The position numbers and the translations under genes are program-made. Under the pieces are notes generated by a model. It had not been told where the DNA came from. It saw only the letters and a list, made by a program, of their open reading frames with translations, and made no database searches. Shown here one piece after another: positions 17,833 to 51,118 of a stretch of 64,000 nucleotides of DNA (the first letter of the stretch is position 1; every line of letters starts with the position of its first letter). Location of the stretch: IMG/VR virus record IMGVR_UViG_3300045999_008996, positions 62,001 to 126,000 of that record. One strand, 5' to 3'.

Positions 17833-17891
17833 ACTATAAAACCCCACAGGGTCTCTGTGGGGTACTGGTGGACGGTTTTAAAAGTGTCTAC
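17833..17891 (-). promoter_or_regulatory. Repeated promoter/stem-loop motif, copy 6, at the end of the enzyme block
   Basis: TATAGT 17833-17838; 9-bp stem accccacag/ctgtggggt; GTGGACGGTT and AAGTGTC boxes. Confidence 0.6.
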
Positions 17892-19462
17892 TCTGTATCA
17901 AAAAAGAACATTTGCCAGCAGCGGCTGTTTTGCTTAACAGTACCAAAATATTGTGACGCTGAATGAATAGCACTTGCATCAAAAATCACAAGACGATTAT
18001 AAACATTTCCGAGAACATCTACTGGTTCAAATGGTGTTCCATCTAAATGACATCCACCGGGAACATCTTTCCATGCAGCATCCCAACCTTTATCAAAATA
18101 AGTTCTTGCTCTTGTTTGTTTATGGGCATATAAAGTTGTTCCACACTGATAAGGTGCATCTGGAGTGAGATATAGCATTCCTCCCCACTTTTGACTATCA
18201 CAGTGATACACTAATGGTTCTCCAGACCAAGAGATTTGAAATCTTCCATTCATTCCATGTTCTTCCCAAGCAGTAATTTTTCTTCCCATAATCTCTTCAA
18301 ATCTTTGTTTGAGACCTGGAAATAAAAATTGTTGTTCGGTTCTTCTACCAATGAATCCTCTACCAAATCCACCTTCAATATACTCTTGCTTGAGTGCAAA
18401 CTCTCTTACCGCATCTGGATCCTCATAAAAATTATCTACAATCCATGCAGTTGGTTTTGTGATGGACATTAGATTTATTGAAAAAATATTTTTGTTAGAA
18501 TCTGAATCTGGTAGTAAAAATTCTTTAACTTTTGGTAATTTAAAAATTTCTTTCGGGAGATTATCAATAGGATATTTTTTTAAAATAGTATTTTCAAATC
18601 CAGATGGTGGAATTTTTCCTTCTTCTGGAATATCTTCCATCAATCTATCTTGAGTTGTTTGTGAATTATATTTTACATAATTTAAAGATTTAAACTCATC
18701 ATCATAATGAACAAATGATTTTATTTTTTCTACCCGTTTTTCCCCATTACCCATCCAACTAAAATGCCAACCAAGATCTTGTATAATATTTCCATCTTGC
18801 ATTAAATATGTTATTGGTAGTTTATTTAATACACATGATCTAATTTGGGTTGGAGTAGATATCTTTAACTGTTTTTTCGTAGCAAAAAACATTCCACCAT
18901 CCCAAGGTTTGGGTACATTTTCATTTTTTAAATAAACTCTAAGATCTGCTCTTCCTTCAAGATATACTAATGGAATTTTAATAATAAAATCTTGATTTTG
19001 TCTGCACATAGAAGAAATCCATTCAATAGATTCTGGTTTTACAATCTCATCGGAATCGCTATGAATAAAAACAGTATCATCATCATATTCTTCAATAACA
19101 GATAATAAAGAATCTTTTTGCATTCTTTCTCTTACTCTACCTCTCAAAGAATTTAAATTCTTTTCATTTATATTGGAGGTGAAATCATAGTTTTCTGAGC
19201 AATTATATCTGTCAATGTCCTCAATCACTAAATCAGAATCTTCTGGTATTTTTAAATCTATAATTTTAATTTTTTCTTTTGGCAAATTTAATTCTTCAAT
19301 TCTATTTCTTAAAGTATATTCAATTGGTATCCCACTTTGAGTTTTATTAGATTCGCAAATTATAAATTCATCTACATGATCTTTTAATATGTTAATTCTC
19401 AATTCAAGAAGTTCTTTTCCTGTAGGATCAAAATAAGGAAAAAAGTCTACAATTTTTTTCAT
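17888..19462 (-). CDS. GT17-like glycosyltransferase fused to DUF6445-like 2OG-Fe(II) oxygenase
   Basis: E.LELR...VDEFIICESN.T.SG, SDSDEI, GWHFSWMG; C-terminal IVDNFYEDPD.VR, HCD, YNRLVIFD..AIHSA, R..Q.FFF. Confidence 0.8.
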   Translation of the reverse strand: MKKIVDFFPYFDPTGKELLELRINILKDHVDEFIICESNKTQSGIPIEYTLRNRIEELNLPKEKIKIIDLKIPEDSDLVIEDIDRYNCSENYDFTSNINEKNLNSLRGRVRERMQKDSLLSVIEEYDDDTVFIHSDSDEIVKPESIEWISSMCRQNQDFIIKIPLVYLEGRADLRVYLKNENVPKPWDGGMFFATKKQLKISTPTQIRSCVLNKLPITYLMQDGNIIQDLGWHFSWMGNGEKRVEKIKSFVHYDDEFKSLNYVKYNSQTTQDRLMEDIPEEGKIPPSGFENTILKKYPIDNLPKEIFKLPKVKEFLLPDSDSNKNIFSINLMSITKPTAWIVDNFYEDPDAVREFALKQEYIEGGFGRGFIGRRTEQQFLFPGLKQRFEEIMGRKITAWEEHGMNGRFQISWSGEPLVYHCDSQKWGGMLYLTPDAPYQCGTTLYAHKQTRARTYFDKGWDAAWKDVPGGCHLDGTPFEPVDVLGNVYNRLVIFDASAIHSASQYFGTVKQNSRCWQMFFFDTE

Positions 19463-20577
19463 ACTCTTTCAATTACAGTGAGACCATTATTGTTTGTTTT
19501 GTGAATTTTAAATCTCCATTCTGGATTCTCAATTAGGAATTCAATAATTGCTGGAAGAAGTCCAATTGGTTTTTCTTTGTATCCATTTTCTGTTGTAATA
19601 GAATATGGTTCTCCGTCAATCCCAAAAGTATGAGTATCATGAAATGCAATATATTTTCTAACTTTTTGCGGATGAATTTTAAGTTCTTGTTTTAGTTGAT
19701 CATAACAATGCCAAGTATCAATAAACAAAAGATCAGTTTCTTCTATTTCAATATCTAAAACATTTGCTTGAATATAATTCACATCTTTTCCAAATTGTTT
19801 TGCTTTATTGAAAAGATCATTAACCTCATCATCAATATAAAGATCATAAGATCTTAAAATTGTATCAGTATTTAAGAATGCTCTAGTACTTACTCCAGTT
19901 CTAACTCCCATTTCAGTAACATGTTTACATTCTTTGGCGAGATTAAAAAGAATTGGAAGATTTTCGCTAATATCTGAAAATGTCTCACACGCTTTTTTAT
20001 ATTCTAATTCAAAATATTTACTATTTACAATATTAAGTTTATTCATATTTTCCAATATAATGTTTTTATGAGTTTCAGTAAAATTTAAAAATTCATTTTT
20101 GTACAAATAGTCGAATAAATCTCTACTTTCTTGACCTTTTCCCCAATTCCAAGATGAAGTTGCTTTTTGGAAAATCAGCAAATGTTTACCATCATACTCT
20201 GGAATATTGATTGATACTATATCTTTTTCGTAACATTTTATTCCGAGCGTAGAATAAATGTAACAGTTTTGCCATTCTCCTTTCTTTTCATAAAGTAAAG
20301 AAAGGAAATAATATGCTTCTGGTCTTTCTGGAAGAAGCACTAGTGCATTTTCTAGTAATATTTTTTCTGTCGTGTCTCTTGAACCCTGAGACTTATAACA
20401 GAATGAAGCATGAATTAATGCACGATAGACAAGAATATTGTCTTCTGCTCTTTCTGCTGCTCTTAAGTAATAGGTGTGAGCAGGAGCAGTGTGTCCTTGT
20501 CTTTCATACCATTGTGCAAGATTATAATTCTTCTCGCCGTTTTCAGTATCTAAACTAAATTCAATCAGTTCATTCAT
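19459..20577 (-). CDS. TPR domain plus class I SAM methyltransferase (Methyltransf_24-like)
   Basis: YNLAQWY...PERPEAYYFLS; EMGVRTGVST, LLFIDTWH, IAFHDT. Confidence 0.8.
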   Translation of the reverse strand: MNELIEFSLDTENGEKNYNLAQWYERQGHTAPAHTYYLRAAERAEDNILVYRALIHASFCYKSQGSRDTTEKILLENALVLLPERPEAYYFLSLLYEKKGEWQNCYIYSTLGIKCYEKDIVSINIPEYDGKHLLIFQKATSSWNWGKGQESRDLFDYLYKNEFLNFTETHKNIILENMNKLNIVNSKYFELEYKKACETFSDISENLPILFNLAKECKHVTEMGVRTGVSTRAFLNTDTILRSYDLYIDDEVNDLFNKAKQFGKDVNYIQANVLDIEIEETDLLFIDTWHCYDQLKQELKIHPQKVRKYIAFHDTHTFGIDGEPYSITTENGYKEKPIGLLPAIIEFLIENPEWRFKIHKTNNNGLTVIERV

Positions 20578-21544
20578 TGATAAATTCCTCCACGAAAGAT
20601 TTTGAAATTCTTAAAATATAAGCAGTATTATCTTGTGCTCCGAAGGTGATTAGAAAATCATCTTTATGTCGTGCTAAACCACAAGAGAATTCGATTTTCA
20701 TATTCATAAATGAGAATAGAGGAGAGAACTTTTGGTTCTTAAAGTTCTTATCCCAAAAAACAAAACGATGGCGATATGTAGCGTCTTTTCTTCCTTGCTC
20801 ACTATTATATAAATCCGTCTCGTGAATAAGAGTTAAATAACCGCCATTATACTCAATAACTTGAGAACCTCCCCTCATATCATTGAAGTTTGGTTTGTAT
20901 TCTGTTGTTTCAAAAATTTCAGTTTCTCCACCATTTGGGTCGAATTTCATCAATGCAGTTGGATTTGTCCACTTTAGCAAATGAAAGGGTTTTCCTTCAA
21001 TTGGAGTGCAATTTTTCATACAATATTCATTGTCAGGTGGAGGTCCTGGAATTCTGTGCCTTGAAACTTCCTTGACTTCGGTGTCAGTGAAATCAAGACC
21101 CGAAAGTTCCATCCTCCCAGTCCCAATAGTATCTAAATCTCTTCTTACACCAATTCCATATATCTTACCTTCCCATTGAATAAGACGAACATCTTCTAAA
21201 CCAACAAATTCCCATTGAGGGGGATATGTATCAAATTGAGAAGTATCGATTTTTGTATAATGGACAACATCTAAATTATCATCCAATTCTGCAATATAAT
21301 TTGTAGTTCTCAAGTGCATATCATTCTCTGGGTGAATATATGATAGAGGTCCCCAGAGATGTTCAAATTTGTTGAGTTCTGAATGATAAAGAGTATAATT
21401 AACGTTTCGGATATTAACTAAAATCTTATCATTAACTACAAGAACTGATGGATTAGTAAGTGAAGGTCCAGAAAGATCTTGTGGATGTATGAGCAATGGT
21501 TTGATTAAACCACCATTTTCTAGTGCAAGTTTTACAAAATTCAT
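20570..21544 (-). CDS. Five-bladed beta-propeller glycoside hydrolase/phosphorylase-like protein (GH130-like)
   Basis: NPSV...RNVNY...GLEDVRL...KN...RGG. Confidence 0.65.
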   Translation of the reverse strand: MNFVKLALENGGLIKPLLIHPQDLSGPSLTNPSVLVVNDKILVNIRNVNYTLYHSELNKFEHLWGPLSYIHPENDMHLRTTNYIAELDDNLDVVHYTKIDTSQFDTYPPQWEFVGLEDVRLIQWEGKIYGIGVRRDLDTIGTGRMELSGLDFTDTEVKEVSRHRIPGPPPDNEYCMKNCTPIEGKPFHLLKWTNPTALMKFDPNGGETEIFETTEYKPNFNDMRGGSQVIEYNGGYLTLIHETDLYNSEQGRKDATYRHRFVFWDKNFKNQKFSPLFSFMNMKIEFSCGLARHKDDFLITFGAQDNTAYILRISKSFVEEFINE

Positions 21545-21586
21545 AGCAAAGATTTCTGTTTTATATGTTTAAATTGTTTGTTGATA

Positions 21587-21952
21587 CTATTTATTTTCCG
21601 TCAGAGAAGAGATATGCTCTTGACACATTTGAATGTCTTGCTCGATAAAACCTATCTGTTCTTGGATATTGGCATACTCTTTTGAATCTTCTTGATATTG
21701 AGAAAGTTGTTCTGTAAGAGATGTGATGTTTTGTTGATTATTTGCAATTCTTGCTTGGTGCTGCTCAATATCCCATTCTACTGTATATGGAGGTGGAGTT
21801 GGATGAGTGATAGTTGCTTCAATTTCAAAACTTCCACCTTTCTCGTCAATCAATGCCTGAACTTCTTCGAGAGTGTATCCAGTTTGATTATTAGAGTCAG
21901 CAGTTAAGTAATAAAGATGATTTAGTGGTAAAGTTAGTGTTGTAGTTTGCAT
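21587..21952 (-). CDS. Coiled-coil hypothetical protein
   Basis: Start MQTTTLTL by TGATG overlap; Gln-rich heptads. Confidence 0.7.
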   Translation of the reverse strand: MQTTTLTLPLNHLYYLTADSNNQTGYTLEEVQALIDEKGGSFEIEATITHPTPPPYTVEWDIEQHQARIANNQQNITSLTEQLSQYQEDSKEYANIQEQIGFIEQDIQMCQEHISSLTENK

Positions 21953-22980
21953 CAAAATTTCCTCCAAAGTTCTTTTGAAAATTGTACCCAGTCTTCTACT
22001 CTGGTTTCCCAACTATAATATTTATTACAAATCTCCACTTGTTGATTATTGTCAAATTTACCTTCACGATACTCTGTGATTGTTCTTTTAAGTTCTCTAG
22101 TAAATCGTTCAATATGTTTATTACGATCTGGAACAAACCCATAATGTCTTGCAAATCCAAGACCTGTTTCGGGAAGTGCAGCAAGATTACTAGAAAGTAC
22201 AGAACACCCAGCACATAGTGCTTCAATCATACAAATACAAGATGTTTCCATAAAGTAAGTTGGATAAGCAAAGATATGAGTATTCAAGAGTTGTTCTCTA
22301 ATCTTGGAGTTATTAGTTCTTGTATGGCGCACAACTCTTTTATCTTCATTCGCAAGTTTTAGACAATACCGAAGAAACTGCTCTTCTTGTGGATTGATAT
22401 GGGAATATTCATAAGTCTGTAGTCCTTGATGATATTGTTTCTTTCTTTCATCAGGGTCAAGTTCATGAAAGATATGAAGTTCAAAGTCTTCTTCTGGAAT
22501 AAGTTTAATAGATTCAAGAAGAATATCCAAACCACGAATAGGATTTGAATGAAACATCAGTTGAAGTTTTCCTTCAGGTTTTTTATGAACAGGAAATGGT
22601 TGTGTCGCATTTTTAAGAACAAAACACTTTTCCATTGGAAGTTGAAGTCTTTCACCAAACCTTTCATATTGCCAGTTGGAAACAAAAACATATGCCTTGA
22701 AGTGCTTTTGAAATTCTTTATCCAGAAGTCTCTCAATACCCTCTTCCATATGATGAGGATGTAACCAGACAATATTAGAACTATCAGGAGACAGAGTATT
22801 ATCACCTGGAATCACACACCAGTGCCAGTCAGCAAGGTCTGGAGCAGCAGGAAGAACATAATCCTGCCAAGCACGTCCCATAATTTCAGTACCACCTACG
22901 CCATCAGGATTAAGAACTGCCTCAAGAAGAGGTGGCATATTGTTATGCAAGTATTCTAATTTTGTAATAACCTCTTTCAT
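21952..22980 (-). CDS. GT-B (GT4-like) glycosyltransferase
   Basis: GGTE, VFVSNWQ, RGLDIL, YPTYFMETSCICMIEA. Confidence 0.85.
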   Translation of the reverse strand: MKEVITKLEYLHNNMPPLLEAVLNPDGVGGTEIMGRAWQDYVLPAAPDLADWHWCVIPGDNTLSPDSSNIVWLHPHHMEEGIERLLDKEFQKHFKAYVFVSNWQYERFGERLQLPMEKCFVLKNATQPFPVHKKPEGKLQLMFHSNPIRGLDILLESIKLIPEEDFELHIFHELDPDERKKQYHQGLQTYEYSHINPQEEQFLRYCLKLANEDKRVVRHTRTNNSKIREQLLNTHIFAYPTYFMETSCICMIEALCAGCSVLSSNLAALPETGLGFARHYGFVPDRNKHIERFTRELKRTITEYREGKFDNNQQVEICNKYYSWETRVEDWVQFSKELWRKF

Positions 22981-23819
22981 AATACCTCTTTCAAAAAGTT
23001 TTCCATTGGAGATTTTTTAAATATTTCTAAACCTTTTTCTGCTTGAGCATCAAGTTCTTCTGGTTTTTTAAGAAGTTTGTATGCAGTATCAACAAAACGA
23101 TTATAGGTTGAAGTGAACGTTGTTCCTTCCATATAATCTGGAAAGTCCGTATCTGGATTTCTTTCGCAAAGAACAGGAACCTTATTTTGAATGAGATGTG
23201 TAATTCTTACCATTTCAAAGATTTGATTATCATGATTATGGAGATTAATCACTAACTTTGCCCTCTTAATCAGTTCATCTCTTGCATCACCATAAGTTGA
23301 TTGAACCGCAACAAAATTAATCTTTTTGTTGTCGGCAAACTGTTTCATAATATGCTCTCTCCTTGGAGATGGGGAGAGATAAGCAAGAATATCAATATCC
23401 CTATCCTCTGGTTTATTTCTTTCAAAATAAGAGATTTCAGGAACATATCCAATCTTGAAATGTTTAATGTTTTCTACACCCACTTTACGAAGAACTTCAA
23501 CGTTTCTCATAGAGTAGTCCCACACCTCAAGACCTCTATATTTTTTACACCATCTTAAACATTCTGGTTGTTCTTTCATTTGTTCCAAAGAATATACAAT
23601 TGTATTCTTTGGAATATCATGTCTCACTACATCTACAGGACAATGGTGCATTCCAAATACAATATTTCTTCGGTCTGGTACAAAATCATTTACACTATTC
23701 GTTACATCATATCCCAACCTTTGAAGAGAAAAGAATACTGCTGCTTCAATCTCATGAAAAACTTCTGCATGAACATTAAAATGATTATCAGGTACAATTC
23801 TTACCAAATTAAATTTCAT
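22977..23819 (-). CDS. Putative GT-B glycosyltransferase-like protein
   Basis: VWDYS..N, SPRR, YGDARDELIKRAKLVINLH, FEMVRI. Confidence 0.65.
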   Translation of the reverse strand: MKFNLVRIVPDNHFNVHAEVFHEIEAAVFFSLQRLGYDVTNSVNDFVPDRRNIVFGMHHCPVDVVRHDIPKNTIVYSLEQMKEQPECLRWCKKYRGLEVWDYSMRNVEVLRKVGVENIKHFKIGYVPEISYFERNKPEDRDIDILAYLSPSPRREHIMKQFADNKKINFVAVQSTYGDARDELIKRAKLVINLHNHDNQIFEMVRITHLIQNKVPVLCERNPDTDFPDYMEGTTFTSTYNRFVDTAYKLLKKPEELDAQAEKGLEIFKKSPMENFLKEVL

Positions 23820-25242
23820 TAATGAATTCTCCAAAATTCTTTTTAATTTCACTTATAAGATTTATATCTTTAGAAACTACACCTAATCCGTTGCAATGAC
23901 CAAAGTTAGTTTTTGGTAACTTAATTTCTTTAAAAAATTTATTAACACCAAATTCTGAATTGTCAACCATTGTATCGTGCATAAGAACTATTCCATTTTC
24001 TTTTAAAAATGGAGTCCATTTTTCAAAATCATTCTTAACTGATTTGTAATCGTGCATTCCATCAATATGAAGAATATCAATTGGTTTATCCCAAGTCTTA
24101 ACTACATCATCAAAGTATCCCTTAATAAATGTAATGTTATTCAGTTCTAATTCTTTTTGTTTTTCTAAAACATAATCATAAGTATTTCTTACTCCCGCAA
24201 ATGGATCTCCTTCAAAACTATCAATTCCGAAGATTTGACCTTGATTTGAAAGAGCAAAGCAGAATGTGGAATAAGCATAATCAACACCTAAATCAACAAC
24301 TGTTTCTGGTTGAACTCTACGAACTAACCAGTCAGCAAACATCCTATGGTCTCTCCAATTAAAGTTATTTTGACTTCCAACTTCCATTAGAATATCTAAC
24401 TTATTTTTTACATAAGTATTTTCATCCTTTTCCACATCATTACGATACATTTCTGGTGGATAATATGTAAAATATCTTTCCAACCCCTGATTATCATATT
24501 GATGATGACGACGATAGTGAAAACAATATTGTTTTGGAATCCCTGTTGCCATCCAAAGTTCAAAGCAATAACGATAGTTTTGTAGTTCTCTCATCATTGC
24601 CTCTACATCCATATACTCTTCAATCTTGAGTGGATGCTTCAGTTTGCGGATGTAATCATTTCGTGCCCACCAGAAGTTTCCAGCATAATGCTGAACAACA
24701 AAATCAAGTTTAATATCGTGTCTTTCTACCCAATCAACACCACAACAATCGTAACCTTCATCTAATTTTGCAATGCAGTCTTCCCACTTTTCAATATTAT
24801 AATACTGCATGTAATGTCTCCAGTCCTTAATCGCACCAGGAATATGCGTTGAGTATGAACTTATTCCTTTATTATGAAAATAAAAAACATACCCATCATC
24901 TTCAAGGCAGTGCTCATAAATTTTGGCGAGAGTTTGACCCTCATAGAAGTTTGGTTGTTCACCTACATTTCTCATATCAATGATATTCACAAATGGAAAT
25001 CTATCTTTGATATATCCAGTCACCATTTGATCATATGAGTGACCTGTCTTGGAGTTATAAAGTCCAAGGGGCAAGGTGATACACATGTTGATGGTTGCTT
25101 TATCTGCAAGTCCTGCAGATTTAAGCAGTCCCATTTGTTCATCTATCCACCAAATCCACATATTATTTGTATCGGGAATAAACAAATGATAAAATACTGT
25201 TATGGTTTTTTTAATTTTCTTTTCGTTTTTATAGTTCAACAT
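23809..25242 (-). CDS. Putative glycan-modifying domain fused to SAM methyltransferase
   Basis: YFHNKG...HYAGNFWW...FELW N-domain; VDLGVD, IDILHIDGMH, VLMHD C-domain. Confidence 0.75.
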   Translation of the reverse strand: MLNYKNEKKIKKTITVFYHLFIPDTNNMWIWWIDEQMGLLKSAGLADKATINMCITLPLGLYNSKTGHSYDQMVTGYIKDRFPFVNIIDMRNVGEQPNFYEGQTLAKIYEHCLEDDGYVFYFHNKGISSYSTHIPGAIKDWRHYMQYYNIEKWEDCIAKLDEGYDCCGVDWVERHDIKLDFVVQHYAGNFWWARNDYIRKLKHPLKIEEYMDVEAMMRELQNYRYCFELWMATGIPKQYCFHYRRHHQYDNQGLERYFTYYPPEMYRNDVEKDENTYVKNKLDILMEVGSQNNFNWRDHRMFADWLVRRVQPETVVDLGVDYAYSTFCFALSNQGQIFGIDSFEGDPFAGVRNTYDYVLEKQKELELNNITFIKGYFDDVVKTWDKPIDILHIDGMHDYKSVKNDFEKWTPFLKENGIVLMHDTMVDNSEFGVNKFFKEIKLPKTNFGHCNGLGVVSKDINLISEIKKNFGEFINEI

Positions 25243-25931
25243 ACAACATTACTCTTCATATGACCGACAATAATATTAGGGTCTACAAATACTTTATGAC
25301 CCTGCTCTGCAACTCTCTCACAGAAATATAAATCTTCTCCTAACGGAAGTTCATAAGTTTCTCCATCAACTTCTTGAACAACCTTACCAAGACCAAACCA
25401 AGGTCTTTTTAAACTTTCAAATACTCCAGATTTAATGCACATAAATCCCATACCAACTCCATAAACCTCAATAGGTTCTCCAAGTTTTTGTAAAATTTCA
25501 AGTTCCTCTCTTGAAGTTGGTCTAAAGTCATTTTTGTTTTTGTGTATCATCGCATCCATTCCTTGTGCTTCAAAATACACTGCAGAAATAACTGACTTAT
25601 CGCTCGCATAAAGTCTTAGAAACTGCTCTGGATTCCAAATAATATCACTATCAATACAGAAAATTTTATCATAAGTGTATTGCCCCTTTCCTGGTGAAGA
25701 ATTAAAGACTTCCAGACTTCTTGAACCAGTAATAGTTGCTTCTCTTGCATTTGTTACAAGTGAAGCATATTCGTTTTGATAAATCCAGGAAATCTTATTT
25801 GCTTCTAGTGTATGAATCGTTGCAAGCAGACACTTTACATAGTCTGCACACATTGAATTACCGGGAGTTGTAATCACCACATTGAAGTGTGGTTTTGTTT
25901 GCTGCTGCTGAGAATTAGAATAATTTAACAT
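25236..25931 (-). CDS. GT-A (DxD) glycosyltransferase
   Basis: IDSDI, GMGFMCI, GEDLYFC...VGH. Confidence 0.8.
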   Translation of the reverse strand: MLNYSNSQQQQTKPHFNVVITTPGNSMCADYVKCLLATIHTLEANKISWIYQNEYASLVTNAREATITGSRSLEVFNSSPGKGQYTYDKIFCIDSDIIWNPEQFLRLYASDKSVISAVYFEAQGMDAMIHKNKNDFRPTSREELEILQKLGEPIEVYGVGMGFMCIKSGVFESLKRPWFGLGKVVQEVDGETYELPLGEDLYFCERVAEQGHKVFVDPNIIVGHMKSNVVC

Positions 25932-25935
25932 AAGA

Positions 25936-26655: not shown

Positions 26656-26675
26656 ATAGTGCAAATAATAAATTC

Positions 26676-26684: not shown

Positions 26685-26698
26685 TATCTAGGTAGGTT

Positions 26699-29419: not shown

Positions 29420-29440
29420 TTACTTATACCTTCCTTTGGA

Positions 29441-29447
29441 TATTTAT
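29441..29447 (-). promoter_or_regulatory. Late promoter ATAAATA
   Basis: Intergenic, upstream of 29419. Confidence 0.6.
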
Positions 29448-29449
29448 TT

Positions 29450-31249: not shown

Positions 31250-31261
31250 TTACTTATCCTC

Positions 31262-38240: not shown

Positions 38241-38572
38241 TAGATTGACTCACTAGGGTTTACCAGCACCATTCCATCAACAACTTTTGTTTTCTTACCT
38301 GTTGATGATGTAATAATTACATCATAGTAGTATCTTCCTGCCTTTAAGTCATCAGTGACTGTATTTGCAAGAGATACAACAACTTGTCCTGCAGCAGACA
38401 CAATTCCTACACCAAATGGAGTAGAAGTTGCAGACTCTGGAAATTTGCGAATTTTTGCAACCCCTGTATGTCCCGTTAAATCCAAAGGACTGCCATCAGG
38501 ATTATTTACAGTAAAAACTTCCTGATAATCTGTTCCTTGTTCAATAACAATATTAACTGCAGCGACAGCCAT
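38240..38572 (-). CDS. Small virion/baseplate-associated protein
   Basis: NIVIEQGTD...LDLTG...AKIRK...GRYYYDV; late promoter ATAAATA 38592-38598. Confidence 0.7.
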
Positions 38573-40773: not shown

Positions 40774-40790
40774 TATTTATTATTATATCA
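40774..40790 (-). promoter_or_regulatory. Tandem extended -10 (TGaTATAAT) and late (ATAAATA) promoters
   Basis: 40782-40790 and 40774-40780, upstream of 40763. Confidence 0.55.
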
Positions 40791-43649: not shown

Positions 43650-43690
43650 TTTTTATAATTGGTTTCCTACAAGCATAATATTATTTATTC

Positions 43691-46528
43691 TTAAATAATT
43701 GATGCTTGTAGTGCTGATGATAAAGCATTTGCTGCAGAACTCGTTGCAGCAGAACTAATGCGAGGGGCAGTTAAGTTTGCACCAGGAACTGCTGTAATAG
43801 TTTCTGTAGAGTAGTCTAACTTTTCCATTAATGATGGACCAGGAGAACCACCACCAAAATATCCTGCTCTTGAGTTACTTGTTGCGGACAAAAGTGAACG
43901 CTGTACTATTGCACCAGGAACTGCTGTTCTTGTATCAGTCGAATAAGTAATCTTATCCATTGTTGACACAATACCACCAGGACCACCTCCACCTCCAAAG
44001 TATCCATCATTTGAGTTACCTGTTGCGGCGTGAGCAGAACGGGGAATACTTAATGTAGCAGGAAGTAATGTTCTCGTATCAGTTGAATAAGTTAATTTAT
44101 CTATTGTTGAAAAAAGTGCTGATGCATCATTAGTACCACCACCAAAATATCCTGCTGCAGAGTTTCCTGTTGCAGCAAGAGTATTACGATTAGAACTTAA
44201 GACTGCAGCAATTGGTGCAGCGGTCTCTGTAGAGTAGGTTAATTTTTGTATCGTTGAAACTGCTGCTCCACTATTATTTCCACTACCAAAGTATCCTGCT
44301 AAAGAATTTCCTGTTGCTGAAAATCGAGAACTTATTGCTCTTAATGGAGCACCCGGAACTTGTGCTGTGGTATCAACAGAATAAGAAACCCTATCAATTG
44401 TTGATGGATTATTAATACCTCCTCCAAAATATCCTGCTATTGAAGAAGATGTTGCAGCAAAATCATAACGTGCATTACTTAATGATGCACCAGGAACTGC
44501 TACTGTTGTATCAGTGGAATAAGAAACCTTGTCCATTGTTGCTAATGGACCAGTAGAACTACCCCCAAAGTACCCAGCATTTGCTTGAACTGGAGATGTA
44601 GTAATATTTTGTTGGGGTAATGCGTTTGCTGTAGAACTTGAGGCAGCAAGGAGACTACGAGGAAAACTTAAAGATGCACTAGAAATTGCGGTTGTCGTAT
44701 CAGTAGAATAATCGACTTTATCCATTGTAGAATAATATGCTAGTGGACTAGGGGCAAAACCACCACCAAAATATCCCGCTGTTGAGTTGCCTGTTGCAGC
44801 AAGACGACTGCGAGAAAAACCTAATGAGGTTGATGTTCTTGTATCAGTGGAATATTCAATCCTATCTATAGTTGCTACTGGACCAGGAGAACCGCCACCA
44901 AAGTATCCTGATGTTGAGTTGCCCGTTGCGGCAAGAACATAACGTGAACCACTTAATGATGCGCCAGGAACTGTTGATCTTGTATCAGTGGAATAATTGA
45001 TCTTATCAATTGTTGTTACTGCACCGGGAGCACCACCACCAAAATATCCTGCAGTTGAATTTCCTGTTGCAGCAAGACCAAAACGACTAGAACTTAATGT
45101 AGTAGGAAGTAATGTTCTTGTATCAGTGGAATAAGTGACCTTATCCATAGTTGCTACTGGACCGCCAGGAGTACTTCCACCCCCAAAGTATCCTGCTGTT
45201 GAAGACGATGTTGCGGCAAGATAACTACGAGAACCACTTAACGCTGCTGTGGAGACTGTTGCTATCGTATCGGTTGAATAAGTGACCTTATCCATTGTTG
45301 CTACTGGACCAGGAAGACCACCACCAAAATATCCTGCTGTTGAAGACGATGTTGCAGCAAGACCATAACGTGCAGGAAAAATATTTGCCCCAGGAACTGG
45401 TGTTGTTGTATCAGTGGAATAAGAAACCTTGTCCATTGTTGACCGAACGCCGGGGGATCCTGGACCAAAACCACCCCCAAAATATCCTGAGTTAAATGAA
45501 GATCTTCCTGATATAAAGTTTCTTGAGGTTGTTAAATTTATTGCTGGTAATGCATTTGCTCTTGCACTTGAGGCAGCAAGACGATTACGAGGAACAGTTA
45601 AGTTTGCACCAGCAACTGTTGTTCTTGTATCAGTGGAATACGAGACTTTATCCATTGTTGCTACTGGACCTGGATCACCACCACCAAAGTATCCTGCAAT
45701 TGAATTACCTGTTGCGGCAGCGTTTTCGCGACCAGAACTTAAGTTTGCAGTAGGAACTGCTGCTGTTGTATCAGTAGAATAGGAGACTTTATCCATAGTT
45801 GCTACTGGACCAGGAGAACCACCTCCAAAATATCCAGAAGATAAATTACCTGTTGCAGCAAGTTCTTGACGAGCAGAACTTAAGTTTGCACCAGGAACTG
45901 CAAATGTTGTATCAGTGGAATATGCAACCTTATCCATAGTTGCAAGATCAATTCCACCAAGACCCCCACCAAAATATCCTACTACTTGGTTTCCTGCCGC
46001 AGCAAGATTACTACGTGAGGCAATTAAGTTTGCACCAGGAACTGCCGCTGTTGTATCTGTTGAATAAGAAACCTTATCCATAGTCACCACAGGACCAGAA
46101 CCCCCACCAAAATATCCTGCCGCAGAGTTTCCTGTTGCAGCAAGATAACCACGAGCAGCACTTAATGAGCCAGGAATCGGAGAGACAGTATCGGTTGAAT
46201 AAGTCACCTTATCCATTGTCGCTACTACTCCAGGAGATCCAGGACCACGACCACCACCAAAATATCCTGCCACAGAGTTACCTGTTGCAGCAAGACCATA
46301 ACGAGGAACACTTAAAAATGTAGCAGGAAGTGGTGACGTGGTATCAGTTGAATAAAATACTTTATCCATCAATGAAAACAAAGATAGACTAGTATTAGTG
46401 CCTCCAACAAAATATCCAGTGTTCAGTGCTGGTTCATTAATGAAAACTTCATCTGGACTAATCCAGTTATTATCTTTAATTTCTAAAAGTATTTCAGATA
46501 AAGCAAAAGTCCCCCTAGTTTCAGCCAT
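43691..46528 (-). CDS. Kelch-like triple 6-blade propeller virion protein (paralog)
   Basis: 18 repeats; same linkers and C-terminal ANALSSALQ. Confidence 0.8.
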   Translation of the reverse strand: MAETRGTFALSEILLEIKDNNWISPDEVFINEPALNTGYFVGGTNTSLSLFSLMDKVFYSTDTTSPLPATFLSVPRYGLAATGNSVAGYFGGGRGPGSPGVVATMDKVTYSTDTVSPIPGSLSAARGYLAATGNSAAGYFGGGSGPVVTMDKVSYSTDTTAAVPGANLIASRSNLAAAGNQVVGYFGGGLGGIDLATMDKVAYSTDTTFAVPGANLSSARQELAATGNLSSGYFGGGSPGPVATMDKVSYSTDTTAAVPTANLSSGRENAAATGNSIAGYFGGGDPGPVATMDKVSYSTDTRTTVAGANLTVPRNRLAASSARANALPAINLTTSRNFISGRSSFNSGYFGGGFGPGSPGVRSTMDKVSYSTDTTTPVPGANIFPARYGLAATSSSTAGYFGGGLPGPVATMDKVTYSTDTIATVSTAALSGSRSYLAATSSSTAGYFGGGSTPGGPVATMDKVTYSTDTRTLLPTTLSSSRFGLAATGNSTAGYFGGGAPGAVTTIDKINYSTDTRSTVPGASLSGSRYVLAATGNSTSGYFGGGSPGPVATIDRIEYSTDTRTSTSLGFSRSRLAATGNSTAGYFGGGFAPSPLAYYSTMDKVDYSTDTTTAISSASLSFPRSLLAASSSTANALPQQNITTSPVQANAGYFGGSSTGPLATMDKVSYSTDTTVAVPGASLSNARYDFAATSSSIAGYFGGGINNPSTIDRVSYSVDTTAQVPGAPLRAISSRFSATGNSLAGYFGSGNNSGAAVSTIQKLTYSTETAAPIAAVLSSNRNTLAATGNSAAGYFGGGTNDASALFSTIDKLTYSTDTRTLLPATLSIPRSAHAATGNSNDGYFGGGGGPGGIVSTMDKITYSTDTRTAVPGAIVQRSLLSATSNSRAGYFGGGSPGPSLMEKLDYSTETITAVPGANLTAPRISSAATSSAANALSSALQASII

Positions 46529-47027
46529 TTTTTATGATTATTTTCTGAAAGAGCATAGAGTTATTTAGATTAGTAGCATAAGAATGCCATAAATTACTTC
46601 TAAATAAAACCATTCTATTATACTTTGCAGTAATATTCCCATACTCTTTCCATAAACTCAAATCAGACTTAAAAACTTCTACAAGATTGTTTTCGTTGAT
46701 TTGATATTGATTCATTTCGTCTAAAGTTGGAAATGCTTCTAGTCCTGTTGCAAGATGCGAATAAAACTTAATTCCGGTCTCACCAAACGATTGCATTGGT
46801 AATGTCAGATAAATGACTGCAATCCAATCAGAACTAAGATGAGCAACAACATTAGAATCACCACCAACTTCATTCGTTGCTGAAATGATTTCAATAGGAT
46901 TACCAATAATCTCTGCAATTTTATTTACTGTTTCATTGGTAATCACACATTGATTCTCAAAAAAACCTTTATGATATTGGTGTGGAATATCATAAAGGTT
47001 ATCAACTATAACGATATGTTCTCTCAT
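46521..47027 (-). CDS. Degenerate DUF6445-like oxygenase homolog
   Basis: IVDNLY..P, W.AVIYLT, YNRMVLF...LWHS; HxD replaced by HLS. Confidence 0.65.
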   Translation of the reverse strand: MREHIVIVDNLYDIPHQYHKGFFENQCVITNETVNKIAEIIGNPIEIISATNEVGGDSNVVAHLSSDWIAVIYLTLPMQSFGETGIKFYSHLATGLEAFPTLDEMNQYQINENNLVEVFKSDLSLWKEYGNITAKYNRMVLFRSNLWHSYATNLNNSMLFQKIIIKNG

Positions 47028-47875
47028 TCTGGAGTGTTATTACCTTCAATTTGCTTTTGTTCTGCTGCAGGTTTGATTGCCGCACCATAACCTAAATCAG
47101 CACCAGTGAGTTTCTCATAACCTCTCATGACCTTACTCTGAAGGTCATTAATAAACTCAAGTCTCCCTCTTGGATCCAGAAGTTTATCCATTGGTAGATA
47201 ACCTTCTTTGAATTGATTACGTGGATCAACCATTGAAGGAGCAGAAGCACGACGCATTGCCTGGAGATTGGCACCAGAAATACCTGTTTGTGCTGCCATT
47301 AAGTCATCAAGTGCTTGTTCTGCAAGACGAGTATCCCAGTATTCTTGATTTTCTTCGAGGAATTGTTGTCTTGTAGGAGGTGTACCGCCATTTTGCTCTA
47401 CCAGTTTTTCGAGCATCTTATCCAAGTGTTCAAGTTGATAAAGACGATCGCGAATTTCCATCTCACTGCCTTTAATGTAGTGTGTCATTTCAAGTTCTTC
47501 AAGGTCATACCAGCAGAGTTTTTTACCTCCACCAGGACCACCAAATTCCCACATAATAGGTTGAGATTTATCCTTCCCTTCCCACTTATATTCAAACTCA
47601 CGAATTCTTTCTTTCATTTCGATAAGTTTGCTCATAAATCCACCTGCCATAATACGACGTTCTTTGAGAATATGCTCAAAAGAAACAGAGATGTTATGAG
47701 TGTTCAATCCAATGAACTTTTCAATTTGGAAGTTAGTTCTTCCTTGTGCCATTTCTTTATCACTTTCTTCCCAAGCAAAAACATTTTGAGATGCTTGCAT
47801 CAAAAATTCATCTTCTATCGCTACTTTCTTTGCATTTGTTGGCGTATAAGTCAACGCAAAATTTCCTTCAGACAT
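47024..47875 (-). CDS. Helical protein, possible fibre partner/chaperone
   Basis: GRTNFQIEKF...EYWDTRLAEQA...GISGANL; AAGGA RBS before MSEGNF. Confidence 0.6.
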   Translation of the reverse strand: MSEGNFALTYTPTNAKKVAIEDEFLMQASQNVFAWEESDKEMAQGRTNFQIEKFIGLNTHNISVSFEHILKERRIMAGGFMSKLIEMKERIREFEYKWEGKDKSQPIMWEFGGPGGGKKLCWYDLEELEMTHYIKGSEMEIRDRLYQLEHLDKMLEKLVEQNGGTPPTRQQFLEENQEYWDTRLAEQALDDLMAAQTGISGANLQAMRRASAPSMVDPRNQFKEGYLPMDKLLDPRGRLEFINDLQSKVMRGYEKLTGADLGYGAAIKPAAEQKQIEGNNTPE

Positions 47876-47923
47876 AATCCTTTTCAATTTATGAAAATGT
47901 GTACTACTATATAGTTGCTCTAA

Positions 47924-50458
47924 TCAGACCAAACTTTGTGCTAGAAGTTCGGTTGCCACTTGCTTACCCCACTTTTTCTCAAAGTGCTTACGGTAATTCT
48001 TTTCTCTTGTTAGAGTCTTTTCTTTTTTCTCACCACTTCTCCATGTTGATTTCCCAAAGAAATGAATGAGATAAGAATTATAATTCAGATCAACATTAAA
48101 TCCAAGTTGATGAACTCTCAAACGATAATCAACGTCTTCTCCACCATTCTCAAATCTTTCATCTAAAAATCCAGCAGTTGATAGAATTTCGTGAGGAATA
48201 TAGAAGCAATAGAAACCAATAATTGATTTGTTGATTTGTTCCGGTTGTACATTGAGTGTCTTAACAAACTCATTCAACTCACTTTCTTTTCCTTGGATGT
48301 CTTCAAGATCCATTGCTGGTTGTACCTTGAGACTTCCATAATCACCAACTAGTTTTTGATTGCAGAGAGGAACCAGAACAGTATTTTTAGAATTGAAGTC
48401 TTGATTCCAATTTTCAGTGAAAACAACGTCATTATTTAACCCAAAGAAATCAACTCCATCAATCAGAGCAAGTTTCATCACAAAGTTCATATTAGATGCA
48501 AATGGTTTTGGAGTATTATTTGCAATCAGAGTAATGTGCTCTCGATAATCTGTTAGAGAATACTGCCCATCATTATCGATTAGAAAGAATCTATCTTGCT
48601 CTCTCAATTCAGTATTTTGAAAGAAAGACCTAAGTGCAAGTTCAGTATATTTTTCAGTGCTCTTTGTACTCGTCATACAATAATACACTGGTCTCTTTTC
48701 TACCTTATTGCTCTGAACCGTATTAATTACTTGCTTCCATTGTTCTGCAATCTTCTTCCAATCATACTTTTCAGTCACATAATCTGAAATGAGTTTGGAA
48801 ACTTCCTGATAAAACTTTGGTTCTTTATCATAATAATCAAGTGCTAAACAACAAGCATCAGCAAACTGACAAATGAAGTTATCAGTAACTTTCCAACCTT
48901 TGGAAGTATTCTCACCTTCAATCGGAACTACTGTTGCATTCTTTTCACCAGCAACTTCTGCAAGTGCTCCAATGTTTGTAATGATTGGATATGCACCACA
49001 CTTCATTGCTTCAATCATCGAAACACCAAAGGTTTCTTCCCAGATGTTTGGATGAATAAAGAATGCTGACTCTTGATATTGTTTCACCAATTCTTCACGA
49101 TCAATGGCAGGAGAGTATTCCACATTTGGAAGAGTCTTTAGATATTCATAGAGTTCAATAAATTGATCATTTAATGGTCCATAAAGAGACATTGAAGAGA
49201 AGATTTTAAACTTCACGTTAGGATGTACTTTAGAAATCAGAGGAATGATTTTGGATAATACTTCAAGACCTTTATAAGGAATTGAAGTGAAAATCATTGT
49301 CTTTGTTTTTTGAGTGGAATGCTTAAACATTTCAGCAACTCCATTTGGAATCACTGTAATTTTATGCTCAGGAATATTCAAAAATTTTACAAGTTGATCT
49401 TTGTTCCACTGCGAAGGTGAAACAATATGATTCACGGTGTTATGATCAAAGTTTAGAAAGACTGGTTGATCATAAGCGTGATGTGCCCAGAGAATTTTAT
49501 ATTGGTGATTTGATTTTTTAATTTCTTCAGGTAAATGAGAAACAAAAACATTTTCTGGAAATGTATAATGTTCTTGCAAATACACATAGGATGTTTCAGT
49601 TGCTCCACTAGGACTTTTCATGTTGGTTTCTTTCATTTTATAAAATTCTTTTGGAAATATTTTAACAATTAACTTACGAAGATTATCTGGATAGCATTGA
49701 AATTGATATTCTTTAAAATCTTCTCCTCTATGAAGAAGATCTTTTTTATTTTTTATGGCATCAAGAATATTATCTTCCTTAATGTATTTTTCTTTATTAA
49801 ATTCTTGATGTGCGAATGATTGCAGTTTAGTCTTAATTTTTTCAATATTACCAAAATAAGTGAAATGCCATCCACCATCTTCAATAGGACTTAACTGAAA
49901 TCTTCTATTACGAAAATAATCACACCCATACTTAAGAGTTGTTCGAACATTTGAAAAAACAGTTCCTGCCCAATCACTTGTAGAAAAAGTAGAAAAATTA
50001 TAGTAAAACATATCGCATTTTGCGACATACATAAATTCTTCTTGAAAAGATTTATAATTTAAAATTATAGTTTGAATGATTTCTTTTCTTGGAATTTCAT
50101 CAACATCACTAATCATGAAAAAATCACTCGAAGAAAATGATTTTAAATGTTCAGTAATATAATCTCTTTGCAATCTTTCTAACTTCCAATTACCATTATC
50201 AAAGTCACACTCTATTACATTATTTAAAAAGTTAAATTTATTAATATCTGGTTCATATTTTAAGCGAATAATTTTATTTTTAATTTCTTGTGGTATATCA
50301 TCAAGAATTTCATCTAAATGATAAGGTTTTGGTTTTCCAGAATGAGTATAGTTACACTCACTAATTACAAAGTGATCGACAACATCATTTAAATATTCTA
50401 AACGGAGTTTGAGAATATCAAACTCATTAAAAAACATAAAACTATCAATAACTTTCAT
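47924..50458 (-). CDS. Triple glycosyltransferase fusion GT17-GT4-GT2
   Basis: FFNE..ILKLRL, SDVDEIP, GWHFTY; GATE, VIPNG, EETFGVSMIEA; LNNDV, GFLDERF..GGEDVDY. Confidence 0.85.
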   Translation of the reverse strand: MKVIDSFMFFNEFDILKLRLEYLNDVVDHFVISECNYTHSGKPKPYHLDEILDDIPQEIKNKIIRLKYEPDINKFNFLNNVIECDFDNGNWKLERLQRDYITEHLKSFSSSDFFMISDVDEIPRKEIIQTIILNYKSFQEEFMYVAKCDMFYYNFSTFSTSDWAGTVFSNVRTTLKYGCDYFRNRRFQLSPIEDGGWHFTYFGNIEKIKTKLQSFAHQEFNKEKYIKEDNILDAIKNKKDLLHRGEDFKEYQFQCYPDNLRKLIVKIFPKEFYKMKETNMKSPSGATETSYVYLQEHYTFPENVFVSHLPEEIKKSNHQYKILWAHHAYDQPVFLNFDHNTVNHIVSPSQWNKDQLVKFLNIPEHKITVIPNGVAEMFKHSTQKTKTMIFTSIPYKGLEVLSKIIPLISKVHPNVKFKIFSSMSLYGPLNDQFIELYEYLKTLPNVEYSPAIDREELVKQYQESAFFIHPNIWEETFGVSMIEAMKCGAYPIITNIGALAEVAGEKNATVVPIEGENTSKGWKVTDNFICQFADACCLALDYYDKEPKFYQEVSKLISDYVTEKYDWKKIAEQWKQVINTVQSNKVEKRPVYYCMTSTKSTEKYTELALRSFFQNTELREQDRFFLIDNDGQYSLTDYREHITLIANNTPKPFASNMNFVMKLALIDGVDFFGLNNDVVFTENWNQDFNSKNTVLVPLCNQKLVGDYGSLKVQPAMDLEDIQGKESELNEFVKTLNVQPEQINKSIIGFYCFYIPHEILSTAGFLDERFENGGEDVDYRLRVHQLGFNVDLNYNSYLIHFFGKSTWRSGEKKEKTLTREKNYRKHFEKKWGKQVATELLAQSLV

Positions 50459-50464
50459 ATAATA

Positions 50465-51118
50465 CTAACCTTGATAAATGTGATAACCAGTGTGACTAAG
50501 TTTAATTGTTGGATCTAACCAAATATTATAACCAACTTGTTGTGCTCTATGGAAGAAACTTTTATCTTCCGACATAAACCCATTTTGAGTCCGATATTCT
50601 GCAAAGTAATGATATGAATTATTAAACTCTGCAGAAGTATGTGGAGTATCTGAATGATAGTCCGAAGGAATATATTTGAGTCCAGGATTTTGTTTTGCAA
50701 TATCAAGAAACACTTGACGGTGTATCAAAACAAAACCCATTCCATTTCCGTTAATCCTCACCAAATCTCCGTGTCTTTGTTCTGGTTGAACAATATCGAC
50801 ACAGTACCTTTCTGGAATAATCTTCATTGGATAAGCGCCAGAAACAATCGGAACTTGATGTGCAATCAATTTTATCACGTCCTCTGGATCAAATCCAATG
50901 TCACTGTCCAAAAAGAACAGGTACTCGTGTTCTGTGTTGTTAATGAAAAAATTAGCAATCTTTGAACGTGCTTGAGTAATCAAAGAAGAGTTCGTCAGAG
51001 TTAATAGTCCGTGAGGAATATCATTTCTGACGAATGCTTTACCAAGATTAAAAAGTCCAAGAGTGGTTTTTTCACTCACAATTCCTCCCATACAGGGAAG
51101 TCCAATCATTATACTCAT
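50465..51118 (-). CDS. GT-A (DxD) glycosyltransferase
   Basis: SLITQARS, FLDSDI, GMGFVLI, SEDKSFF...LSHTG. Confidence 0.8.
   Translation of the reverse strand: MSIMIGLPCMGGIVSEKTTLGLFNLGKAFVRNDIPHGLLTLTNSSLITQARSKIANFFINNTEHEYLFFLDSDIGFDPEDVIKLIAHQVPIVSGAYPMKIIPERYCVDIVQPEQRHGDLVRINGNGMGFVLIHRQVFLDIAKQNPGLKYIPSDYHSDTPHTSAEFNNSYHYFAEYRTQNGFMSEDKSFFHRAQQVGYNIWLDPTIKLSHTGYHIYQG

Follow-up and report, generated by a model that had tools for sequence, protein, structure and literature searches.

Gene content of the tail-fibre region

The window analysed here, a 64,000-nucleotide stretch of the IMG/VR record IMGVR_UViG_3300045999_008996, corresponds to positions 62001-126000 of a virus record of 222,563 bp that is complete and bounded by direct terminal repeats. 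The genome encodes gp23 (the T4-type major capsid protein), psbA, and psbD, and a megablast search of the region against GenBank phages, which found almost nothing, returned sparse nucleotide matches to Synechococcus phages; thus, the source is a T4-like cyanomyovirus from a metagenome. From ~17.9 to 63.4 kb every real gene is located on the minus strand, and the span 17888-63440 is a tail-fibre region in which enzyme genes are interleaved with the fibre genes (Table 1). We analysed its domain content using Pfam, PHROGs, NCBIfam, PDB sequence searches, the ESM Atlas, and one AlphaFold model. The span is best explained as a tail-fibre hypervariable region holding two independent cassettes, A and B, each of which combines a set of enzymes with a family of β-propeller proteins of the receptor-binding type. 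The genome's sole sulfotransferase, its sole 2OG-FeII_Oxy_3 protein, and all three of its DUF6445 copies are confined to this region.

A sequence-only reading of the window had proposed two fibre-plus-enzyme modules at this locus, and the Pfam, PHROGs, and NCBIfam family scans bear out its domain inventory. The span contains ~8-10 glycosyltransferase (GT)-like domains in total, where about 10 had been counted, and GT-A, GT4, GT17, and DUF6445 matches occur in both modules, as claimed. The sulfotransferase, the collagen fibre, and the Asp-box and Kelch-like repeats are confirmed by Pfam and repeat analysis. Firm family matches comprise two GT17, two GT4, three phrog_1574 GT-A, and three DUF6445 domains, as well as the 2OG-FeII_Oxy_3, sulfotransferase, collagen, and S74 domains. 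Other entries hold in part. One of the two proposed methyltransferases, the Methyltransf_24 domain at 23809-25242, is firm, whereas the second (19459-20577) rests on an E-value of 0.085. The four proposed 2-oxoglutarate (2OG)-Fe(II)-type domains correspond to three DUF6445 matches and one 2OG-FeII_Oxy_3 match, but one DUF6445 copy lacks the HxD motif. The GH130-like assignment has an E-value of 0.03 together with the annotation of a homologue, whereas the TPR matches fall under the Pfam cut-off. Cassette B also reaches further than had been proposed, as it includes the U273 gene, and more fibre genes extend to 63440.

Table 1. Genes and features of the tail-fibre region (window coordinates; aa, amino acids; PAPS, 3'-phosphoadenosine-5'-phosphosulfate)
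Feature	Coordinates	Strand	Evidence or remark
Terminator-like hairpin	17841-17863	-	9-bp stem (6 GC pairs) and T-run; immediately 3' of the last enzyme gene
GT17 fused to DUF6445 2OG-Fe(II) oxygenase domain (cassette A)	17888-19462	-	Pfam GT17 2e-8, DUF6445 4e-6
TPR N-terminus and weak Methyltransf_24-like C-terminus (A)	19459-20577	-	Pfam E 0.085
Conserved 324-aa protein, weakly GH130-like (A)	20570-21544	-	Pfam E 0.03; homologue annotation
U141, small conserved protein (A)	21587-22012	-	44-73% identity in relatives
GT4-type (GT-B) glycosyltransferase (A)	21952-22980	-	Pfam 7e-5, phrog_2170 5e-22
U291, Glyco_trans_1_2 (CgeB-like) GT-like protein (A)	22977-23852	-	ESM Atlas 0.98-0.99; Pfam E 0.015
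DUF8361 N-domain and Methyltransf_24 O-methyltransferase-type C-domain (A)	23809-25242	-	Pfam 2e-18; ESM Atlas
Two tandem phrog_1574 GT-A glycosyltransferases (A)	25236-25931 and 25936-26664	-	Invariant DSD, ED, H
Three paralogous fibre/adhesin-like proteins, 906, 599, 898 aa (A)	26699-33958	-	Fibre-type N-terminus, polyglycine domain (Gly_rich_2)
Collagen-like tail fibre, 1426 aa, C-terminal S74 intramolecular chaperone	33960-38240	-	Pfam Collagen 1.5e-90, S74 6e-17
Tail-fibre-assembly-like protein	38240-38572	-	phrog_3304/1084
2OG-FeII_Oxy_3 oxygenase (cassette B)	38659-39324	-	PF13640 62.9 bits vs cut-off 27
PAPS-type sulfotransferase (B)	39326-40147	-	Pfam
DUF6445a, predicted 2OG-Fe(II) oxygenase fold (B)	40149-40763	-	Pfam; HVD...H; directly upstream of sulfotransferase
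Two Kelch-like proteins, 953 and 945 aa (B)	40788-46528	-	phrog_19111; repeat analysis
DUF6445b, degenerate paralogue without HxD (B)	46521-47027	-	Alignment
U287, conserved helical protein (B)	47024-47887	-	Conserved in relatives
Three-domain glycosyltransferase, GT17 + GT4 + GT2-like C-terminus (B)	47924-50458	-	Pfam; GT2-like by motif
phrog_1574 GT-A glycosyltransferase (B)	50465-51118	-	PHROGs; invariant DSD, ED, H
U273, small fibre-like protein (B)	51149-51970	-	N-terminal GDGSKLTGI motif; conserved at cassette B head in relatives
Further tail-fibre genes: four fibre genes and U111	52004-63440	-	Beyond the modules of the sequence-only reading
S74 fibre	52004-53401	-	
Second collagen + S74 fibre	53420-56734	-	
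900-aa fibre	57078-59780	-	Perfect TATAAATA 26 nt upstream
1058-aa fibre	within 52004-63440	-	

Enzymes and fibres of cassette A

The last enzyme of cassette A carries GT17 at its N-terminus and DUF6445 at its C-terminus, where the alignment shows that HCD...H is retained. The C-terminus of the adjacent TPR protein contains a D-x-L-x-I-D...HDT motif shared with Methyltransf_24, and the 324-aa protein, for which a profile search gave no PDB match, has a 54% identical homologue in phage S-SCSM2R that is annotated as mannosylglucose phosphorylase (MGP). In the same phage (locus L001, 19997-21862), ORF195 is labelled 'cytochrome c-type biogenesis protein CcmH/NrfG' and is really a TPR + DUF6445 fusion; its N-terminus is homologous to the TPR protein of the window, its C-terminus is 78% identical to the GT17-DUF6445 protein, and it adjoins a GH130-like gene and a baseplate/tail-pin gene. 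U291 shows a structural TM score of 0.93 to PF13524 clusters in the ESM Atlas and matched nothing in the PDB profile search. The DUF8361 domain gave an RgpF-like lead only, and the Methyltransf_24 domain fused to it is distantly homologous (~21-27% identity) to mycobacteriophage (O-)methyltransferases, the matches coming from cluster K-type phages and not from the characterised Corndog genes. The sole PDB relative of the phrog_1574 GT-A family, which is present in both cassettes, is the glycosyltransferase A197 of the archaeal virus STIV, the capsid protein of which is glycosylated.

The three paralogous fibres of cassette A contain one or two Asp-box-like propellers inserted in the polyglycine domain, with 13, 6, and 13 repeats of ~40 aa (STDxIxW), respectively; a tblastn search with one of them matched only two distant phages. 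The neighbouring collagen-like fibre comprises 223 G-X-Y triplets, with Thr at position X in 111 and at Y in 56 of them and Gln at Y in 125. Proline makes up 2% of this protein, Pro-Gly occurs once against 5.7 expected occurrences, and the triplets of the collagen fibres are almost free of Pro and Lys. In this composition the fibre resembles the glycosylated, Thr-rich class of collagen-like proteins to which BclA belongs.

Enzymes of cassette B and the Kelch-like propellers

The best PDB matches of the 2OG-FeII_Oxy_3 protein are human P3H1, the prolyl 4-hydroxylase (P4H) alpha-2, and the P4H enzymes of Bacillus anthracis and the chlorovirus PBCV-1. The sulfotransferase profile retrieved the protein-tyrosine sulfotransferases TPST1/2 first (E 6e-7 to 8e-5), with an alignment mainly over the PAPS-binding loops, and there is a weak NCBIfam match to the Nod-factor sulfotransferase NoeE; tyrosine is thus a possible acceptor. 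DUF6445, for which sequence and profile searches gave no PDB relative and the literature searched no mention, is assigned by its AlphaFold model (pLDDT 90; Foldseek probability 1.0 to many 2OG oxygenases) to the 2OG-Fe(II) oxygenase superfamily, with a predicted double-stranded β-helix and an HxD...H triad. The fold neighbours of DUF6445a include proline hydroxylases, PHD2, and bacterial P4H, as well as the sugar-acting HygX and EvdO1, at TM ~0.5. HxD...H and the distal His are present in two of the three DUF6445 copies (HVD, HCD). The distal His-Ser is still present in DUF6445b, two relatives of which have lost the first His as well; because the HxD iron ligands are lost, this paralogue is probably non-catalytic and pseudo-enzyme-like.

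The C-terminal domain of the three-domain glycosyltransferase displays the GT2-type motifs IDNDG and GGEDVDY, which were read by eye only, and is unrelated to U287 according to hhalign. An N-terminal GT17 on the GT4 protein was seen only in the copy from the window, plus a GT17 at the truncated end of locus L074, and the GT2-like C-terminus occurs otherwise only in L006/L007. The AlphaFold model of U287 is poor (pLDDT 47), and the ESM Atlas feature search gave weak leads only (0.69). The U287 and GT4 genes, which are separate in the window, have been predicted as one gene (582-584 aa) in three distantly related loci, L138 (7730-9478), L139 (21912-23666), and L140 (15452-17206). Domain fusions thus recur throughout the system: GT17-DUF6445, TPR-DUF6445 (S-SCSM2R), TPR-(Methyltransf_24-like), DUF8361-Methyltransf_24, GT17-GT4-GT2-like, and GT4-U287.

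Each of the two Kelch-like proteins is composed of 18 repeats of ~47 aa, corresponding to three six-bladed propellers. The family has >880 members, and some of the homologues give faint Kelch matches in Pfam. X-Pro-Gly is the minimal collagen P4H site. The Kelch-like proteins contain 50-52 prolines and 19-21 Pro-Gly sites versus 6-7 expected, located in the variable loop after GYFGGG and in a VPGA motif. These X-Pro-Gly loops would suit the hydroxylase better than the collagen fibre does, a link that we infer from the site counts. The collagen fibre itself was considered as the main substrate of the prolyl-hydroxylase-like enzyme and rejected, since only 2% of its residues are proline and its triplets are nearly proline-free. 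The YSTDT sequence of the Kelch repeat was set aside as a modification site, as it equals the ordinary Kelch strand-turn consensus.

Co-inheritance of the enzymes with their fibres

For cassette B, we mapped the proteins of the window onto 27 IMG/VR loci found via the sulfotransferase (67-91% identity), with flanks limited to 10 kb and some loci being duplicate assemblies. Kelch-like genes are present in all 27 loci, DUF6445a in 26, U287 in 23, 2OG-FeII_Oxy_3 in 22, GT4 in 20, and GT-A in 19; the absences mainly concern loci that are cut by a contig end or genes that possibly lie beyond the 10-kb flank. The sub-blocks [GT-A, GT4, U287, DUF6445b] and [DUF6445a, sulfotransferase] are shuffled among 2-5 Kelch paralogues, yet they stay attached. 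In every mapped locus DUF6445a and the sulfotransferase are adjacent or at most ~1 kb apart, beside Kelch-like genes, and DUF6445b lies directly 5' of a Kelch gene in 13 of 14 mapped loci, usually with overlapping stop and start codons (the exception is L019). Five distant Kelch homologues from metagenomes (32-39% identity, four or five propellers) keep the same partner genes. Cassette B was also found in AG-345-L05, a single-cell virus of the Kyanoviridae, and a reduced version occurs in Synechococcus phage S-SKS1, which belongs to another genus and carries it 24 kb from the annotated tail-fibre genes. In S-SKS1 (L002, NC_020851; locus 41121-43178, record 201121-203129) the prolyl-hydroxylase-like gene is split into SWZG_00285 and SWZG_00286, and the Kelch-like gene beside it (record 201816-203129) is unannotated, which points to a frameshift, a pseudogene, or an annotation gap.

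For cassette A, we identified ~40 loci encoding a homologue of the DUF8361-methyltransferase over its full length, all of which have the same enzyme block beside 3-5 Asp-box fibres. In neither set of loci do cassettes A and B lie within 10 kb of each other; thus, they are independent of one another, and therefore each fibre family has its own enzyme set. In both cassettes the enzymes are 55-97% identical and the fibres 30-63%, the propeller genes being hypervariable and variable in copy number. Co-inheritance of enzyme sets with fibre types, a check put forward by the sequence-only reading, is therefore positive for both modules. A pairing that is conserved, shuffled, and transferable in this way argues strongly for a functional link between the enzymes and the fibres.

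Transcriptional context

The late promoter of cyanomyoviruses has been described as NATAAATA (PMC2984593). Between 17 and 64 kb of the window, 8 of the 11 minus-strand copies of this motif fall in the 60 nt 5' of a start codon, ending 6-43 nt from it (P ~8e-10, a value that ignores the higher A+T content of intergenic DNA). Among the fibre genes, the motif precedes those for the 900-aa fibre, U273 (30 nt), the first Kelch-like protein, the fibre-assembly protein (19 nt), and the 906-aa adhesin; among the enzyme blocks, it precedes DUF6445a-sulfotransferase-hydroxylase (10 nt), U141, and GH130-like-TPR-GT17/DUF6445 (43 nt). The positional enrichment is confined to the relaxed published NATAAATA, and the perfect TATAAATA is not enriched over the window as a whole. 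Most other gene junctions overlap or are shorter than 40 nt, and the stop codon of DUF6445b overlaps the start of the next Kelch gene. The strong terminator-like hairpin downstream of the GT17-DUF6445 gene is likely to mark the end of the fibre-plus-enzyme transcription unit. This arrangement fits late co-expression of the enzymes with virion genes.

Two overlapping perfect TATAAATA motifs are found on opposite strands at 59807-59818 (TATTTATAAATA), each 26 nt (25 intervening bases on the plus side) 5' of a start codon. Their targets are the gene for the 900-aa fibre (57078-59780, minus strand) and an ORF of 139 aa without a family match (59844-60263, plus strand), and the pair could be a bidirectional late promoter.

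Proposed modification of fibre proteins and alternative explanations

We propose, with a probability of about one in two, that the cassette enzymes post-translationally modify fibre proteins rather than the host surface. The fibres as substrates would provide the most economical link. Three of the enzymes have nearest solved relatives that are directed at proteins or belong to a virus with a glycosylated virion, which favours a fibre target. Late in infection, the fibre and enzyme genes would be transcribed together from T4-type late promoters, and the enzymes would act in the cytoplasm on fibre proteins that have just been synthesised. For cassette B, the prolyl-hydroxylase-like oxygenase and DUF6445a may hydroxylate side chains of the Kelch-like proteins, with the exposed X-Pro-Gly loops as the best candidates; the sulfotransferase would then sulfate the new hydroxyl or a tyrosine, and the GT-A, GT4, GT17, and GT2-like enzymes would attach sugars. 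Two putative non-catalytic helpers are DUF6445b, the gene of which is coupled in translation to a Kelch gene, and U287, which distant relatives encode as a fusion with GT4. The product in cassette A would be a methylated O-glycan, made by two GT-A enzymes, the CgeB-like GT, GT4, GT17-DUF6445, and one or two domains of the O-methyltransferase type; it would be carried by the Asp-box/polyglycine adhesins, which are rich in Thr, and possibly by the collagen fibre, which is rich in Thr but poor in proline. Such modifications may adjust receptor binding, make the fibres more stable, or shield them.

The idea that each module builds a glycan on its cognate fibre, as put forward by the sequence-only reading, agrees with the separate enzyme set of each fibre family. 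The methylated or sulfated glycan that it names as the product is hypothetical, and the invariant DUF6445-sulfotransferase pair together with the prolyl-hydroxylase-like enzyme point to direct side-chain hydroxylation/sulfation of proteins at least as much as to a glycan. A fibre target, rather than LPS (lipopolysaccharide) or DNA, is favoured by the late-promoter motifs before enzyme blocks and by the protein-directed nearest relatives. That marine cyanomyoviruses hydroxylate, and then sulfate and glycosylate, their own β-propeller receptor-binding proteins via dedicated pathways is a proposal that we make tentatively.

Several observations weigh against the proposed, still hypothetical fibre modification. 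Polysaccharide synthesis, too, typically employs GT4, GT2, and GT-A enzymes, the similarity of the sulfotransferase to TPST and NoeE lies mainly in the PAPS-binding loops, and the fold of DUF6445a matches sugar-acting enzymes as well. The Kelch-like proteins are no more than putative virion components. Most of the related loci come from one cyanomyovirus lineage and several are duplicate assemblies, so that part of the linkage is inherited synteny. Furthermore, the GTs of this region have been regarded as agents of host O-chain modification (PMC7029224, PMC12801897).

Under that published view, which has been applied to the hypervariable fibre region in cyano- and pelagimyophages as well as to S-SCSM2R (PMC7029224, PMC12801897, PMC2984593), the enzymes would alter the LPS, O-chain, or surface glycan of the cyanobacterium, for instance blocking superinfection, and would lie among the fibre genes since both belong to the same fast-evolving host-interaction island. 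Consistent with it are the weak NCBIfam matches to exopolysaccharide/LPS GTs and the presence in the same genome of a sugar cluster (genome 165038-178385) with an OprB/SLH porin-like gene, GT25, two NDP (nucleoside diphosphate)-sugar epimerase/dehydratases, RXYLT1-like, GT31-like, and GT2 proteins, and a nucleotidyltransferase. However, as this classical cluster lies 39-52 kb past the window end and is free of fibre genes, the fibre-embedded enzyme set is a separate entity. The cluster may supply activated sugars to the fibre-linked enzymes or be a true host-surface system; the sequence-only reading was right that nucleotide-sugar synthesis genes are absent from the window, but the genome has them in this cluster, and no APS (adenosine-5'-phosphosulfate) kinase was found in the genome. 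A crude scan of the ORFs (open reading frames) revealed no membrane-spanning stretch in the enzymes, and Pfam scans of the span no flippase, polymerase, or polyprenyl-phosphate GT. Given also the late-promoter motifs before the enzyme blocks, the attachment of the enzymes to one fibre family through shuffling and inter-genus transfer, and the prolyl-hydroxylase-like and TPST-like enzymes, which have no obvious role in LPS synthesis, modification of the host envelope appears less likely than fibre modification, although it is the main rival explanation. Coupling of enzymes and propellers would also be expected if the latter were lectin-like or adaptor modules and the enzymes acted on another virion protein or the host surface. 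The same linkage evidence holds for this case, Kelch and Asp-box propellers are commonly binding platforms, and the S-SKS1 cassette is located away from the annotated tail-fibre genes. However, the Asp-box proteins combine a fibre-type N-terminus with a polyglycine adhesin domain, U273 with its fibre-type N-terminus heads cassette B, and the propeller genes vary in sequence and copy number like receptor-binding proteins, which makes a non-substrate role of the propellers clearly unlikely.

The absence of any functional link, with the enzymes being auxiliary metabolic or secondary-metabolite genes in a plastic region (for example, 2OG oxygenases that tune 2-oxoglutarate or make small molecules), is improbable. 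Many cyanophage 2OG oxygenases do lie outside structural regions, metabolite synthesis has been proposed for the dioxygenase arrays of Syn9 (Iyer et al., PMC2938197), and the TPR-DUF6445 and GH130-like genes of S-SCSM2R adjoin replication genes; but dozens of loci retain the gene content despite rearrangement, translation of DUF6445b is coupled to that of a Kelch gene, and the sulfotransferase, 2OG-FeII_Oxy_3, and DUF6445 are confined to the fibre region of the genome. Still far less credible is DNA hypermodification, in which the oxygenase, methyltransferase, and GTs would decorate bases of the phage DNA. GTs of DNA-hypermodifying phages are known, the methyltransferase domain bears the PHROG label 'DNA methyltransferase', and the 2OG-FeII_Oxy_3 protein has a weak Tet_JBP match (E 3e-4). 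This match reaches 20.4 bits, however, far under the family cut-off of 34.9, whereas the score of that region for the prolyl-hydroxylase family is 63 bits; Pfam scans detected no cytosine methylase or base-hydroxymethylase in the span, the promoter motifs are of the late type, and a review finds no evidence of DNA glycosylation in cyanomyoviruses (PMC2984593).

Tail fibres decide which cells can be infected, and cyanophages control Synechococcus and Prochlorococcus, which are among the most abundant photosynthesisers of the ocean. If enzymes inherited together with the fibres decorate them, the fibre sequence would not be the sole determinant of host range, of the stability of the particles, or of escape from host defences or grazers. 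The annotation of the GTs of this region as host-LPS genes would need revision, and T4-like phages would join the mycobacteriophages as a group with virion glycosylation. The DUF6445 oxygenase-sulfotransferase pair would then be a previously unknown module for protein hydroxylation and sulfation, giving both the uncharacterised oxygenase family and the phage sulfotransferase a testable substrate, and the fibres would be the first phage virion proteins to carry sulfate or hydroxyl groups, from a family with hundreds of members in ocean metagenomes. The cultured phages S-SKS1 and S-SCSM2R carry parts of the system.

Comparison with known systems

In Corndog-type phages, an O-methyltransferase and three GTs encoded in the structural operon modify the capsid and the tail tube (PMC11600133, PMC4351075), and virion glycosylation of Corndog, Che8, and Myrna is attributed to Freeman et al. 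(2023) as cited in PMC11600133. The cyanophage cassettes likewise place an O-methyltransferase and several GTs inside a block of virion structural genes, here on one strand and overlapping or abutting the fibres. Among the cyanophage enzymes, the Methyltransf_24 domain alone matches mycobacteriophage methyltransferases. However, the substrates of the mycobacteriophage enzymes are the C-termini of capsid and tail-tube proteins in siphoviruses of Actinobacteria, whereas the candidate substrates here are propeller and collagen fibres of a T4-like cyanophage, oxygenases and a sulfotransferase are added, and the system is known from genes.

A second parallel is provided by bacterial dioxygenase-sulfotransferase operons, which are predicted to hydroxylate and then sulfate co-encoded collagen-like/tail-collar proteins (Iyer et al., 2010; PMC2938197). 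Both systems tie the genes for a 2OG-Fe(II) dioxygenase and a sulfotransferase to a fibrous or tail-fibre-like protein, and methyltransferase fusions occur in those operons as well. The bacterial operons use β-hydroxylase/PhyH-family oxygenases and often include a PAPS synthetase, whereas the phage cassette combines DUF6445 and prolyl-hydroxylase-type oxygenases with GTs and Kelch-like partners and has no APS kinase.

Bacillus BclA/CgeB-type systems share with cassette A a Thr-rich, proline-poor collagen-like repeat as a plausible substrate for O-glycosylation, with a CgeB-like GT and methyltransferase-type domains nearby. They differ in that the phage locus has no rhamnose/anthrose operon, carries S74 instead of a C1q-like C-terminus, and shows no homology beyond the triplets. 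The fusion or adjacency of an oxygenase and a GT (GT17-DUF6445) is reminiscent of the collagen hydroxylase-GT enzymes of animals (LH3/PLOD3) and mimivirus (L230), and the 2OG-FeII_Oxy_3 protein belongs, by PF13640 and its PDB matches, to the P4H family of collagen-type, viral (PBCV-1), and bacterial (B. anthracis) prolyl 4-hydroxylases. Unlike in the collagen systems, the phage triplets contain almost no Pro or Lys, and DUF6445 is another oxygenase family with no solved member.

GTs among tail-fibre genes have been reported for the hypervariable regions of marine T4-like phages (Zaragoza-Solas et al., 2020; PMC7029224) and for P-SSM2-type 'LPS' clusters. Such reports assign the GTs to host O-chain modification and do not describe cassettes, fibre-specific enzyme sets, an oxygenase-sulfotransferase pair, or late promoters. 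The gtrABC/O-antigen systems differ further: Wzx/Wzy/WaaL-type proteins, a flippase, and a bactoprenol-linked GT were not found here with Pfam and NCBIfam, and the nucleotide-sugar genes are not in the cluster but at 165-178 kb of the genome. In the literature searched, we found no description of two fibre-family-specific cassettes, of the DUF6445-sulfotransferase pair, of a degenerate DUF6445b coupled to Kelch genes, or of phages in which a prolyl-hydroxylase-like enzyme accompanies Kelch propellers rich in X-Pro-Gly.

Further genes in the window

Among the fibres encoded upstream of cassette B is the second collagen-like protein (53420-56734, minus strand), in which a Reelin subrepeat-B-like domain (E 3e-7) separates the collagen runs from the S74 chaperone. 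Between 1 and 17 kb, the minus strand encodes a DUF4385 protein (14295-14786, E 1e-53) and other small ORFs without a family match. Two genes containing NUMOD3 (homing-endonuclease-like) are located at 5252-6190 and 12877-13623 on the minus strand, with perfect TATAAATA motifs at 6194-6201 and 13649-13656, from a few to 25 nt 5' of their starts.

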